Positions 32,881 through 44,214 of a stretch of 64,000 bases of DNA are shown here, in pieces. Position 1 is the stretch's first letter; each line of letters starts with the position of its first letter. The stretch is taken from the NCBI RefSeq assembly GCF_964204645.1, contig NC_134030.1, forward strand, positions 9,575,222 to 9,639,221, read 5' to 3'. The position numbers and the translations under genes were made by a program. The DNA is from Tubulanus polymorphus. Lineage: Eukaryota > Animalia > Nemertea. The notes beneath the pieces were generated by a model. The model was given only the letters and a program-made list of their open reading frames with translations. It did not search any database and was not told the DNA's origin.

Positions 32881-33015
32881 TTATAGATTCTCGCTACAAG
32901 TCGTCTGAAGCTTGTGTATGTGGCTGTATATTTTCAACGCCGGGCCCAACTTCATAGATAAGCCGGTCAGTACATCGTTTCTTTGCATCAGCAACAAAGA
33001 TTTACCATCGATCTC
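32881..33015 (-). CDS. SAMD1: SAMD1-like exon 8 (SAM C-terminal half, stop)
   Basis: tttcag|[44 protein letters not shown]. Confidence 0.92.
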
Positions 33016-36000
33016 CTGAAAGATATAAACAATAGGCTATCGAATGATTATACGGTATAAGCGGACTTGTTTCGCATTCGCAAAGTTTGTTCGTCGCGCC
33101 AGACGCGAGCGAAGTGGAGTCTTCTGTATATACGTTTAGAATTGCGTCGAAAGTCTTTTGAGGTTGAGTCGGGTGAAGTATGGTAGAATAGCCACACACT
33201 GACGTGGAGAACAGATAAACAGATAGAAAATCCATTAATAATAGATCTTCTCCGCATAATTCCCCCGTCTTTCTAAGTATATTACTTCCTGCCTAACTAA
33301 CCGCTAATTACCTTTTCACTCAGAAATTTACCCAATTACTTTGTGCTCCCCTGTACATATTCCTTCACACCTGGCGATGATCACACCAGCGAGAGTTCGA
33401 AAGGTTGCGTGTTTCGATTTTAATTTTCGATAAATAAAATTAATCCTGTCAATTTTATATACAGTGGGCTTTTTAAACTTATCACGTGGATTATAGCAAA
33501 GTAGGGGCGGTATATTCGATCGTGCCATCATCACGATCTCATCAGACTCCAGGGCCCAGTTGCTCAGTCGTGAGTCAGTCCATTCAAAAGTGTGGTCTTG
33601 AATATTAAGACCGGGCCCTGGTGGCCTACAGCCTAAACCTTAAGTTGTTACATTGGCTATAGAACTGAGTTGGTTTTAGATTGGTCTTAAATCTAAGACA
33701 TGATAGTGCAACTGGCCTCTGGTTCTCAAGAAAGGGATATGCAAAAAAATCGCCTAATGAAACCATTAAGTCGGTAAAACGGGTGGACATTTCGAATAAT
33801 AAAAAGTTAAATTCTACAGTAGGCTTCGCTCGCTCCGATCGTCTCCGTGGCAGGCGGCAGTCTAGCAATAAATAGGAGGATATTCGCGTGGCCGCGACGA
33901 GTGCAAAATAATTATTTCAGTAGTAGTTTCGTTCTTAATCGTTCCCCGAGGAACGCGACCAGAGTATACGTACTTGATCAGAGAAACGCGATGCTTGTTC
34001 GGGGAATCCGGCCCTCGTTATGAACTCGGCTACGTCATCGATCGTCCATTCGGTAGCGTCTTTACCCGCCAGACGCCCGTCCAGATCGATCTTCTTCAGA
34101 ACTGATTCCATGAACTTCTTTTCGCTGAATTTTTCCCTGTTGATACAAGAATTACGTCGACGGAATATATTAGCATGCGGTATAATTTGGAGAGGTGTTT
34201 TTCTTTTTAGGACAGACGCCGAAGAATCGTGAAAACGAAAACAAACTTACTTGACTTTGACGTTCAAGTCGTCGTCGAAAGAAATCGGCGACTCGCACGG
34301 TGTAGGCAGGCACGAGGGACCTCCGCCTTCTGGCAAATTCGAAAAGAAAGAATAGATTTAATCGTGATGCCACGTATTTTTTTAATGATTTCCCGGCGGG
34401 ACACGGTTGACCGATTTCATCCGTGCCGTCGCAGAAAGTATGTACGTATACAGAAAGGCAGATCCACGGGGACTAATTTTGAAGGACGTGACAAGTCAAA
34501 AAGGGTGCTTTGATGTCGAAAGAGGGAATATCAAGCGCACTCCCGCGCGGCGCTGCAGGAGCTAATCAAACAACATACCCCCAGCTCTTCTTTGGTGACA
34601 ATTTTTGTCGTAGGACCTGAACTGGTCACATCCCTTCCGGCACTTTGATGGTTTAAAAAGACAATATTAAGCGTAATCCCGCGCTGAAATGCACCAACTT
34701 TTTTGAAAAAAAAGGCACTCTAAATATTCGACGGATTCGTGGAAATCTCGTAAGCACCCCTGGATCCGCCCCTGTATATACGTATATATAAACGAAACGA
34801 TGATATTCTGAACGAGAAAAAACCACGAAACGGTAAGACGATCGCCGAGGCGGAAATACACGTATGACGGTTCCGTTCTCTAAACTAACCCGTGTTGCAG
34901 GCATCCATTTCTTCATCTCTGTCCGAGGTATCGAGTCCGTTCTGCTGTTCCAACAAACAACTGCTGCACTCCCAGAGACCTGCAATTTTATACAGCACAA
35001 AAATTATACGAGGGCAAGATCCACATCTTACAGGAAATGTACATATATGCATTCTAAAAATTATTTGATACCTTTCGGATTTTCGAGGACTTTCGGTTTA
35101 TGGCACTGCATGTGATATCCCTTGTCACAAGCGTCGCAAAACAACAATTCAGCCTGGAAGTACACGCGAAGCACGTGTTAAGTTGCGAAATACGGTAAAG
35201 GGCTACGCTGTCGAAGATTTGATGGAGTTTAAATCTATAAGAGTTAAATGAATTGCTCTAAAACATCTAGTAGTCTTAATATAATGCCGTGTCACAACCA
35301 TAAAAAAGAAAAAAAGTTTTTACGCGAGCCTAAAATGGTCTAACGTCGTTTTTGAACAACCTGATGGATAGTATAATAACTACAATAGGACTTTGTGAAT
35401 TGGTCGATATTTTCTTTGATAGCTTGGATAACATGTCCACCGCCACAAAAATTACATAATTGAGGGTTGAAAAATATTTCTATTTTGCTATTTTTACCCG
35501 AATCCCGCCGAAATTTTAATTGTTTAAAAAAATTCGTGGCAAACGCGAGAGTGCCGAGGCACGAATCATATTGAATTTCAATAAGTGGTGCATTCCGTCT
35601 TGAAAATACATTTGTAATTGCATAAGGGGTTTTGATATAAGTACAAACTCTCGAACACTTACAGCCTCTCCTGCCTCTGAACAGAGACAGCACGTTTTGC
35701 ATTCGTAACACTGCCACGGCGATCGCAGCGCCCTCTCTGCGAGATCACTCGAGTAGTTCATACAAGATGGGTGAACTGAAAAGAGAAGTTTTGTTTTTGA
35801 AATAAATTTTCGAAGAAGGGGACGAGATTAGATCGGGCATTTTCTTCGATTGCTTTCCCTACCAGTGCTGTTGCATTCTTTACACGTAAGCATGTCTTCG
35901 GGTTGTCCATCGCGATTCGTCTCCGGCGTCAGATAACACAGCCGACATTTAACCACGTTCTCGTCGCCAGGAGGCGTTGGTTCGATATCCATGGCCTTTT

Positions 36001-42000: not shown

Positions 42001-44214
42001 TGATATGATTGACATCGATAACAGAATATTTTCGAACACGGGGAGGAGCGGTCGAGACCCCCAAAAGGCACGGATGCGCCCCTATACGTAGCGAGAGTTT
42101 CATACATATTCTATTTAACGTTTTTAATCCAGCCTATCTAATGAGTTGATACAGAGAACATTGAACCTAGCGCGCGTGATTTGCCGAGCAAGTGAAAAAT
42201 TCAAGTTACTATACATATTATTTGGGGCGAGTAAAGCCGCTAATATACAATTCGGGGCACGGCACGATAAATATGCGCTCGCGAATTTTCGACGGAACAT
42301 TTTCTGAGCGCGCCAGCCGGTCCAGTTGTACGTGTGTATGATCGATCTTCTGCCGACGAAATCGACGTCGCCATCGTCGTCGCCGTCGCCGTCGGTATAT
42401 AAGGATATTTACACCGCCGCAAATTGCGCTGCTATAGTGCTGCTCTAATGTCAGACGATCGCGTTGTGATCAACGGCTTTTATACCACGCGCTCCCCTTG
42501 TTCGGGTCCTGTCTTGAATAAATGTATCGTACAGCCTATTTTGTATGAACCCAATCCGCGGGAATGGAATTCTTTTCGGAGGGGATGTGTCGCCTGGACA
42601 CGAAACACAAAAATACAAATTGCGCTGCTTATGTCCTAATTACTGCAGACGATCGCGCCGATCTCGAACTCGATCAACGGCTTTTACCGCGCGCTTCTTG
42701 TTCGGGCCCTGTCTCGAATTGATATAACATACAGCCTATATCCCGTACATTCGCTATACGCACCCAATCGGCGCGGAGATGGAATTCTTTCTAGGGGAAG
42801 TGTGTCGCCTGGACTTGGAACCCAAAATTACAAAAATGCCTTATGCATCGTCGCCGCACGTTTCGGCGGCGGTTTTATATATATATATATATATATATAT
42901 ATATATATATATATATATATATATATATATATATATACATATATATATATATATATATATATATATATATATATATATATATATATATATATATATATAT
43001 ATATATATATATGAAATTGAGTCGCGCTGGTGTTAATACACGAACACAAAATGATCGAATCGAAACCCCCGTCGGCTAAAGTTTACATCGGAATACGAGA
43101 CTTTCGTCTGGCTGTCGGTTAGTATTTCCAACAATATCGGTGAAAAAGAAATGCATATATATATGTATATATAACGCACGAGCACGTATTACGTACAACA
43201 TATATCTAGGTGAAAAAAGCTCACGCGTCAATAACGGGTGAAAGATGATTGCCTGATGCGCGCCGCTTCAAAAAAGAGAGGAAAATTCGAGAAACGCTTT
43301 CTAATGATATAGATATACAAATAGATAGAATATTCAATTCGCTAATATGTATATATTCATAAGTATAAAAACCTGGAAATAAGAAAAACATAATACCTGT
43401 CATAGAATTACACATTACACCGTTACAACATACTTACCCTTTTCTTATTAAGGGGCGGTCGACCCTTCTTGACCACTTTGCCAGGCGGCGGGGTTGGTGT
43501 TTTGGCGCTGAACGCAGCATTCTCCGTGTCCGCGCTGTTGTTTAGGCGGTCTCTGATCGTCAGCGGACTGGCTTTTCTCTCGGCCGGGTCGACAAACACG
43601 TAGCGTTTGTTCGGCAGTTTTCTAATGCGCCCGGAGTCGACCTCTCTGTCTAGCGCCGTCGACAAATTGACCGCGTTGTCGGAGTTCTTCTTCAGCCAAG
43701 CCGTATTGTCCACGTTCACCTCGACCCATGCTTGGATATCTTGAAGACCGACGCCTTCGCAATCAGCGGATGACGACGACGGCAACTCTTGATCTGCGGG
43801 TTCGGTTTCTTTTGATTTAGACGCATTTATCTCTTCGATAGCGCGCTGTATGTACACGCTCGTCTCGTTGGAATTCAAAACGTTTCCGCCTATTCCGCTC
43901 TTCTTCCATTTAGCCGCATTTCGATAACTGGTGCTACCTTTATATTCCACTTTGATAACGAGTTCTAACTCGACTAAGCGCTCGAGTATCGACTCCGTTT
44001 CCGAACGATTCAGGCCGTAGCGACGCTGAACCATGTGCGAGATATGATCCAAATCGGGTCGCGCTTTTCGGTTCCTCAACTGGTCGATAACGCCTAGAAT
44101 CGTATCCTTATGCTTGACCGCCGGCATGATCGTCGAGTTTGTGCACTTTGTAGCTTTTTCGGCGGCGAAGAACTGCGAGATATTCGGTAGATTTTTGCGC
44201 TCGCCGGCGTGCAT
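32881..44214 (-). CDS. SAMD1: SAMD1-like chromatin protein with two winged helices, a double PHD finger and a SAM domain (8 coding exons, about 524-553 aa)
   Basis: Exons 43438-44214 (alternative ATG 44127), 35863-36085, 35663-35775, 35072-35153, 34890-34979, 34251-34329, 33974-34136 and 32881-33015. All are GT-AG and phase-consistent. The N-terminal [20 protein letters not shown]...[13 protein letters not shown] is the SAMD1-type winged helix. The C-terminal [50 protein letters not shown] is the SAMD1/SAMD13-type SAM. The C4HC3 tandem PHD resembles that of KAT6/DPF. Confidence 0.9.
33974..34136 (-). CDS. SAMD1: SAMD1-like exon 7 (SAM N-terminal half)
   Basis: [54 protein letters not shown]; acag / gtacgt. 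Confidence 0.9.
34251..34329 (-). CDS. SAMD1: SAMD1-like exon 6 (linker)
   Basis: [25 protein letters not shown]; gccag / gtaag; phases match both neighbours. Confidence 0.82.
34890..34979 (-). CDS. SAMD1: SAMD1-like exon 5 (end of PHD2, acidic linker)
   Basis: (G)[29 protein letters not shown]; ttgcag / gttagt. Confidence 0.88.
35072..35153 (-). CDS. SAMD1: SAMD1-like exon 4 (PHD2)
   Basis: [27 protein letters not shown]; ttccag / gtatca. Confidence 0.92.
35663..35775 (-). CDS. SAMD1: SAMD1-like exon 3 (end of PHD1, start of PHD2)
   Basis: [37 protein letters not shown]; ttttcag / gtaag. Confidence 0.92.
35863..36085 (-). CDS. SAMD1: SAMD1-like exon 2 (linker and start of PHD1)
   Basis: ttcag|AAGCCG...; [28 protein letters not shown]; donor gtagg. 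Confidence 0.9.
42875..43012. repeat. (TA)n microsatellite in SAMD1-like intron 1
   Basis: About 138 bp of TA with one CA interruption. Confidence 0.97.
43438..44214 (-). CDS. SAMD1: SAMD1-like exon 1: SAMD1-type winged helix, H15-like second winged helix, basic/AT-hook-like KKGRPP
   Basis: Lies in ORF 43423..44226. In-frame ATGs at 44214 and 44127. Donor AGG|gtaagt at 43437, phase 0. Confidence 0.9.

Follow-up and report, generated by a model that had tools for sequence, protein, structure and literature searches.

The closest described relatives of the gene analysed here are three groups of chromatin proteins that have been studied separately. KAT6A and KAT6B (MOZ/MORF) and Enok carry two winged helices (WH1 and WH2, the second of H15 type), a double PHD finger (DPF), a MYST acetyltransferase domain and a long acidic/SM tail. 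Mammalian SAMD13 is a short, SAM-only protein that has lost nearly everything else. Mammalian SAMD1 brings in L3MBTL3 through a SAM-SAM contact (PMC8115922, PMC11969672). Drosophila Lint-O (CG2662), a repressor of germline genes with two PHDs and a SAM, binds L(3)mbt through contact of the two SAMs; SAMD13 is its orthologue by BLAST, a match doubted by the authors since SAMD13 lacks PHDs (PMC9535798). A gene of the nemertean Tubulanus polymorphus links the three. It lies at positions 44214 to 32881, minus strand, of a window of 64,000 nucleotides (the whole stretch of DNA analysed; contig NC_134030.1, 9,575,222 to 9,639,221), and encodes a protein that is co-linear with KAT6 through WH1-WH2-DPF and ends in a SAM. 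We read it as an ancestral-architecture orthologue of SAMD1/SAMD13, probably also of Lint-O, that would act as a non-catalytic repressive adaptor; our probability for this reading as a whole is about 0.7.

Gene structure and domains

The gene has eight exons with GT-AG introns throughout, agreeing phases and no internal stop, and a coding length of 1662 nt (553 amino acids plus the stop codon). Its features are as follows.

Exon 1, 44214-43438, minus strand: residues 1-259, phase 0 out; codes for WH1, WH2 and a basic GRP motif
WH1, 43906-44118, minus strand: SAMD1-type winged helix, residues 33-103, from Pfam, PDB and model
WH2, 43597-43872, minus strand: H15/linker-histone-type winged helix, residues 115-206, with an acidic insertion
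Basic GRP motif, 43438-43470, minus strand: residues 249-259, AT-hook-like or nuclear-localisation-like
Exon 2, 36085-35863, minus strand: phase 1 out; linker and first half of PHD1; in a spliced contig
Exon 3, 35775-35663, minus strand: phase 0 out; remainder of PHD1 and start of PHD2; in a spliced contig
Exon 4, 35153-35072, minus strand: phase 1 out; core of PHD2, including the acidic residues of the H3 R2 pocket; in a spliced contig
Exon 5, 34979-34890, minus strand: phase 1 out; end of PHD2 (WxCxxC) and an acidic linker; in a spliced contig
Exon 6, 34329-34251, minus strand: phase 2 out; carries the [LP]TPxxSP motif
[LP]TPxxSP motif, 34315-34286, minus strand: residues 434-443, in exon 6; conserved
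Exon 7, 34136-33974, minus strand: phase 0 out; first half of the SAM; in a spliced contig
Exon 8, 33015-32881, minus strand: second half of the SAM (SAMD1-type) and the stop codon

This phase-consistent eight-exon frame had been proposed from the letters alone, and the public Tubulanus polymorphus protein P0001 agrees with it, being of equal length and containing all eight exon translations in the same order. P0001 is annotated "histone acetyltransferase KAT6B-like", exactly the kind of label that the sequence-only reading expected automated pipelines to give. The frame opens at the ATG at 44214; a second in-frame ATG at 44127 (M30) is where homologs start. In run X3, a 1474-nt contig joins exons 3, 4, 5, 6, 7 and 8 and the 3' untranslated region, skipping exactly 509, 92, 560, 114 and 958 nt (CT..AC), and a second contig holds an 87-nt joint of exons 2 and 3 plus 857 nt preceding exon 2. 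Because one spliced contig spans exons 3 to 8, the PHD and SAM exons share one transcript. The proposal that all eight exons form a single transcript thus stands as read for exons 2 to 8 (introns 2 to 7). Reads were placed on 32700-36300, a stretch beyond which the joint of exons 1 and 2 falls, and we infer that joint from the public model, from the paralog's matching phase-0 intron and from the 857 nt, which fit exon 1 plus a leader of about 80 nt. There is no MYST sequence in the whole 64-kb window, where full-length KAT6 queries match the winged-helix and PHD exons only, so the predicted lack of an acetyltransferase holds.

WH1 is of the SAMD1 type, as first supposed. It matches Pfam SAMD1_WH (PF21524) with E 2e-25; among PDB chains SAMD1 scores 63.9 bits (6lui, E 2e-16) against 20.5 bits for the KAT6A WH1; and its predicted model fits 6lui with Z 14.1 and a root-mean-square deviation of 1.1 over 71 residues. 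Eight of the nine DNA contacts defined for the human SAMD1 winged helix (PMC8115922) are kept (R43, R45, K46, R48, Y87, K88, S92 and R94; R56 is His), and the contacts are conserved from cnidarians to deuterostomes. The start of the domain reads RKARPD, where KAT6 has KQKQRP. In the WH1 tree, which was flagged for its long KAT6 branches, a SAMD1-like group made up of the family with this architecture and vertebrate SAMD1/13 stands apart from KAT6 with support 93/92. ZMYND11 also has a SAMD1-like winged helix (model Z 12.4) followed by a PHD, but it has a single PHD plus bromo, PWWP and MYND domains, unlike the Tubulanus protein. Its winged helix shows no DNA binding in an electrophoretic mobility-shift assay (PMC9881136).

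The second helix-turn-helix-wing segment had been aligned by eye with the H15-like domain of KAT6A/B, and the family profile bears this out, matching the H15 domain of HP1BP3, the WH2 of KAT6B (8e4v, E 5e-4) and H1.0 (E 4e-4 to 5e-4 for HP1BP3 and KAT6B). Pfam Linker_histone (PF00538) is matched by 29 of 62 family members; Tubulanus exon 1 alone gives no Pfam match for WH2. The segment is modelled as a winged helix with the order helix-strand-helix-helix-strand-strand. Its net charge is -6 in Tubulanus, with a family median of -1 and a range of 0 to +9 in KAT6. The basic GRP motif that follows occurs in 66 of 110 family proteins, and it may act as an AT-hook or nuclear-localisation element.

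The DPF consists of two tandem C4HC3 fingers with every zinc ligand present, a complete tandem PHD of the KAT6/DPF type as had been proposed. Against PDB the family DPF profile scores best on KAT6A (126 bits), ahead of DPF3 (118) and PHF10 (97). In the DPF tree, whose KAT6, d4 and PHF10 rows are metagenome or metatranscriptome contigs classed by MYST motif or context, the family DPFs form one clade (100/99) beside the KAT6 DPFs (97/92). One KAT6 row (L016), used in the trees, the profile scores and the window comparison, comes from a mammalian Kat6a with several residues unlike those of the human PDB chain and is taken for rodent; a search for further full-length KAT6 that started from the PHDs of a long family member matched only the query itself. 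The BAF subunits d4/DPF1-3 and PHF10 have the DPF fold too and keep the acidic pocket for the unmodified H3 N-terminus, but they fall into separate clades of this tree and have neither winged helices nor a SAM.

Reading of the H3 tail, which the sequence-only reading extended to both acylated H3K14 and the unmodified N-terminus, is predicted for the second of these and doubtful for the first. The acyl-K14 pocket of MOZ has Gly237 as its reported key residue (PMC7800603). The corresponding position is Gly in all 6 KAT6 sequences and in 9 of 11 d4 sequences (Ala in the other two), but in none of 137 family DPFs (116 Ala, 19 Val, 2 Ser). In Tubulanus it is Val334, with its codon split between exons 2 and 3, and there are further changes to Leu, Tyr and Arg at the positions of F211, I260 and S210; across the family most of the other acyl-pocket positions have similar residues (F211 Y/F, L242 M, W257, I260). 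Judged from these residues, the DPF has probably been retuned away from acyl-K14. Closure of the pocket is likely in the Tubulanus protein and less firmly suggested for the whole family, as two d4 proteins have Ala. The residues that form the acidic pocket for unmodified H3 R2/K4 are all kept (E358, C377, D378 and D381, equal to KAT6A E261, C281, D282 and D285), and this PHD2 pocket is kept from cnidarians to deuterostomes. As a separate observation, invertebrate PHF10-like DPFs (L026, L041, L046, L052, L057 and L059) are often without the pocket glycine (Cys, Tyr or Ser instead), and reading of acyl-lysine may therefore not hold for PHF10 in general.

The SAM is SAMD1-type, again as predicted. 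Exon 8 scores 52 bits on SAMD1 (E 2.6e-13) against 28.5 bits on L3MBTL3 (1e-5), with Ph, Scm and Sfmbt weaker. All 14 polymer-interface residues of SAMD1 are kept (Q509 in exon 7, the others in exon 8), and of the L3MBTL3-binding residues R498, L502, L509, G510, L513 and K514 are identical, with R508 replaced by Lys. The short motif [LP]TPxxSP of exon 6 is found in 154 of 215 proteins having both WH1 and SAM (0.15 expected in shuffles), from invertebrates to hagfish, sharks and teleosts; being shared in this way, it lends independent support to orthology. Its consensus resembles a Cdc4/FBXW7 phosphodegron, and it may serve as a degron.

Distribution, orthology and the vertebrate WH2

The protein had been presented as a "missing link"; comparison shows that it is no rarity, its architecture being the standard invertebrate form from cnidarians to ambulacrarians. 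More than 100 relatives share it, many of them on transcript-sized contigs of 1.6-3 kb. WH1, PHD and SAM occur together in sea anemones (Actinia), corals (Montipora), brachiopods (Lingula), annelids (Owenia), molluscs, bryozoans (Watersipora), flatworms (Schistosoma), myriapods (Strigamia), chelicerates, several insect orders, echinoderms and hemichordates, usually under the name KAT6A/B-like. The ESM Atlas likewise has mollusc and arthropod clusters with winged helix, PHD and SAM, and no Drosophila cluster. The family is real, widespread and mis-annotated. A true kat6a/b has been reported in Owenia (PMC12153100), which also has a family member (P0053), and coexistence of KAT6 and the family is shown for Owenia only.

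Tubulanus itself has a paralog (P0013, 45% identical) on another contig with an equal exon plan. The two copies are sisters in every tree, and two ancient paralog groups across lophotrochozoans are therefore unsupported. Adjacent locus tags suggest tandem duplicates of the family in bivalves: P0152/P0062 in Sinanodonta, P0154/P0255-P0257 in Potamilus and P0217/P0228 in Tegillarca. Among chelicerate models, P0002 (Rhipicephalus) has three SAMD1-type winged-helix repeats with neither PHD nor SAM and is possibly repeat-derived or mis-built, and P0236 and P0237 (a scorpion and a relative) have a THAP domain (PF05485) where the winged helix would be, before PHD and SAM, which could be a swap of DNA-binding domains or a fused model.

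In a concatenated tree vertebrate SAMD1/13 are nested inside the family (SH-aLRT 99), and we are very confident that the Tubulanus protein is a SAMD1/13 orthologue. An ancestral-type SAMD1 with a KAT6-like WH1-WH2-DPF module, as the sequence-only reading had it, is what the orthology trees and domain matches uphold. A hagfish model has WH1, two degenerate PHDs and a SAM. Thus hagfish retains PHDs, and among vertebrates it is the jawed ones that lost the DPF, and the DPF only.

The accompanying view that vertebrate SAMD1 is winged helix plus SAM alone, having lost WH2 together with the PHDs, is right about the PHDs of jawed vertebrates and wrong about WH2. A search profile made from invertebrate WH2 only (reversed decoys score at most 4.2 bits) gives 29-56 bits on shark SAMD13, 36 on chimaera SAMD1 and mostly 13-25 on bony-fish SAMD1; in turtle and mammal SAMD1 it aligns to the corresponding stretch with a low score. 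The matching stretch of vertebrate SAMD1/13 is Pfam PF24971, "SAMD1 small helical domain" (SAMD1_SHD), and when the profile of invertebrate WH2 is compared with that of the bony-vertebrate SHD, the match has 97% probability and E 1e-10 across 74 columns. The gar SHD is modelled as a winged helix (predicted local distance difference test score 77.5; Z 9.1 to H1.10), a fold that resembles many winged helices and by itself is unspecific. WH2 is SAMD1_SHD: it survives in shark SAMD13 and in chimaera, teleost and tetrapod SAMD1, within the supposed disordered region of vertebrate SAMD1. In the human protein the "central" region, residues 212-350, would hold what is left of an H15 winged helix, a domain still intact and basic in fishes. 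Low-confidence helices and strands have been described in that region, without its being named as WH2, and its deletion raised chromatin binding (PMC11969672).

Shark SAMD13 (P0105, P0270 and P0268) is a long WH1-WH2-SAM protein, and several shark SAMD1 models are without WH2, which suggests reciprocal loss. Vertebrate SAMD1 (Atherin) and SAMD13 thus agree with the Tubulanus protein in the CpG contacts of WH1, in both the polymer and the L3MBTL3 faces of the SAM, in WH2 as PF24971 and, in fishes and hagfish, in [LP]TPxxSP. They differ from it in that those of jawed vertebrates have no double PHD, in that WH2 is degenerate in amniote SAMD1, and in that TPxxSP is absent from the amniote SAMD1 sequences checked. 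Fibre formation by mammalian SAMD1 is driven by a Pro/Ala-rich region that only mammals have (PMC11969672) and that the Tubulanus protein lacks.

Lint-O resembles the family in having two PHDs followed by a SAMD13-like SAM. Hand translation of its published primers yields Q-V-Y-D-P-S near the N-terminus and, at the position of Gly237, K-W-H; the C-terminal peptide is N-D-x-x-L-x-W. In insect members of the family the stretch from WH2 to the DPF contains K-V-F-D-P-S, and their tails resemble that of Lint-O. It differs in having no reported winged helix, with primer positions that suggest a start after the winged-helix region, and in the Trp at the Gly237 position. It would appear from these short motifs that Lint-O is probably the fly member of the family, one that lost its winged helices. 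The question that the Lint-O paper raises about a human orthologue with PHD fingers then has an answer: jawed vertebrates have lost them.

Each of the domains was already known, as were both trimmed relatives, and databases list these proteins with Pfam labels. In the open literature (subscription papers not covered) our searches brought up no account of the WH1-WH2-DPF-SAM architecture, of a link between SAMD1 and Lint-O, or of SAMD1_SHD as WH2. The family offers an account of how SAMD1, an essential CpG-island repressor, originated, and it means that many invertebrate proteins labelled "KAT6A/B-like histone acetyltransferase" are non-enzymes, so that inventories of histone acetyltransferases are inflated.

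Proposed function and competing explanations

As a repressive adaptor the protein would work in several steps. WH1 would sit on unmethylated CpG in linker DNA, and the DPF, through PHD2, on the unmodified H3 N-terminus (R2/K4), with weak or altered reading of acyl-K14. WH2 and the basic GRP motif may add auxiliary contacts with nucleosome or DNA, by analogy with MORF (PMC9908889). The SAM is predicted to self-oligomerise and to co-polymerise with L(3)mbt/L3MBTL, a link that would bring repressive machinery of the KDM1A/CoREST type to the site. By analogy with its studied relatives, a CpG reader coupled to L(3)mbt would then be older than vertebrate CpG islands, the binding steps being inferred. 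The family is probably older than the split of cnidarians and bilaterians, and probably the product of a copied N-terminal reader module of KAT6 joined to a Polycomb-type SAM. Later, jawed vertebrates would have lost the DPF, some shark SAMD1 and lamprey models WH2, and Drosophila probably both winged helices. Intron positions shared with KAT6 were dropped as evidence of origin, d4 genes having introns at identical DPF sites.

Several points weigh against the adaptor reading. Mutation of eight PHD cysteines in Lint-O did not abolish repression (PMC9535798), and the comparison with Lint-O uses short primer-derived peptides and the BLAST remark of the paper in place of a full alignment. Repression and binding by full-architecture members are themselves predictions, made from sequence and by analogy. 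The acidic charge of WH2 (-6) makes H1-like dyad binding uncertain. The window is CpG-rich (observed/expected about 1.5, and 1.76 in intron 1; 1.12 at the paralog locus, L081), and unmethylated CpG may give little targeting specificity here. As to descent, an approximately unbiased test (L013 left out; L060 not among the extracted rows) does not reject a sister grouping of the family DPF with d4 (p 0.40). Origin from KAT6 therefore leans mainly on the co-linear order WH1-WH2-DPF.

The sequence-only reading held that the protein could act as a non-catalytic competitor of MOZ/MORF. As such a decoy it would read CpG and acylated H3K14 as they do and work mainly by occupying their sites. The shared WH1-WH2-DPF order and the presence in Owenia of both kat6a/b (PMC12153100) and P0053 would suit such a role. 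The acyl pocket can be argued either way: residues besides G237 are mostly similar across the family, and Ala in two of 11 d4-type DPFs may mean that Ala leaves the pocket open, but the split at position 237 (Gly in 6/6 KAT6, in 0/137 family DPFs) and the Val, Leu, Tyr and Arg of Tubulanus speak against acyl reading. A decoy would have no need of the conserved L3MBTL-binding face of the SAM, and both studied relatives work via SAM partners. Because the half consisting of two PHDs and a SAM has been studied in Lint-O as a partner of L(3)mbt, recruitment of a repressor fits better than a decoy, which we consider unlikely.

We also think it improbable that the readers are partly vestigial or structural and the protein a SAM-polymer scaffold or chromatin compactor of low sequence specificity, even though the DPF is dispensable in jawed vertebrates, Lint-O still represses with its cysteines mutated, WH2 is acidic, the local genome is CpG-rich, and deletion of the central region of human SAMD1, with its WH2 remnant, increased chromatin binding (PMC11969672). 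From cnidarians to deuterostomes both the contacts of WH1 and the acidic pocket of PHD2 stay conserved, and four of six coding variants in the read runs are synonymous, with both replacements in the linker, which argues against idle readers. An artefact, in which a broken KAT6 gene adjoins an unrelated SAM gene, or a fused model, could draw on the public name and on an exon 1-exon 2 joint that is not read directly. Its chances are practically nil: PHD and SAM exons lie on one spliced contig, so that the SAM is no separate gene and the PHDs are not spliced to a MYST domain, the window is MYST-free, the paralog repeats the exon plan on another contig, the relatives with this architecture exceed 100, and WH1 is SAMD1-type.

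We tentatively propose, at somewhat less than even odds, that since before the cnidarian-bilaterian split one nucleosome-reading module has served a writer/repressor pair. KAT6 would join the reader to an acetyltransferase; proto-SAMD1 would join it, with the PHD pocket retuned from acylated K14, to an L(3)mbt-binding SAM; at unmethylated CpG promoters the two would make up an acetylation-state switch. Human SAMD1, SAMD13 and fly Lint-O would be trimmed descendants, and the centre of human SAMD1 would hide a folded H1-like WH2 that modulates chromatin binding.

Promoter, introns and neighbouring sequence

Three further features lie outside the coding exons.

NRF1-like palindrome, 44261-44270, no strand assigned: in the promoter/leader region; 0.02 expected by chance
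YY1-like motif, 44296-44304, no strand assigned: 0.41 expected; alone not significant
tRNA-Met gene, 30350-30424, minus strand

The extent of the second contig ahead of exon 2 would place the 5' end of the transcript near 44295. The putative leader holds short upstream open reading frames, one of 13 codons and one of 4 codons that overlaps the ATG at 44214. The lack of CpG depletion suggests that this nemertean methylates its gene bodies, or its genome as a whole, only a little.

The long open frames of neighbouring genes at 18568-19542, 48692-50328 and 52903-54717 (all minus strand) give no Pfam match in any of the three. A second tRNA-like fragment lies about 340 nt from the tRNA-Met gene. 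Intron 7 contains a high-copy repeat at 33549-33722, where the depth summed over contigs is 10,000-40,000 near 33550-33700. This repeat has imperfect terminal inverted repeats of 24 nt and resembles a miniature inverted-repeat transposable element; a second high-copy repeat lies near 33180-33218. In intron 1, two diverged tandem copies of a unit of about 190 nt were recognised by eye at 42560-42830, and a long run of (TA)n comes next, at 42878-43012.

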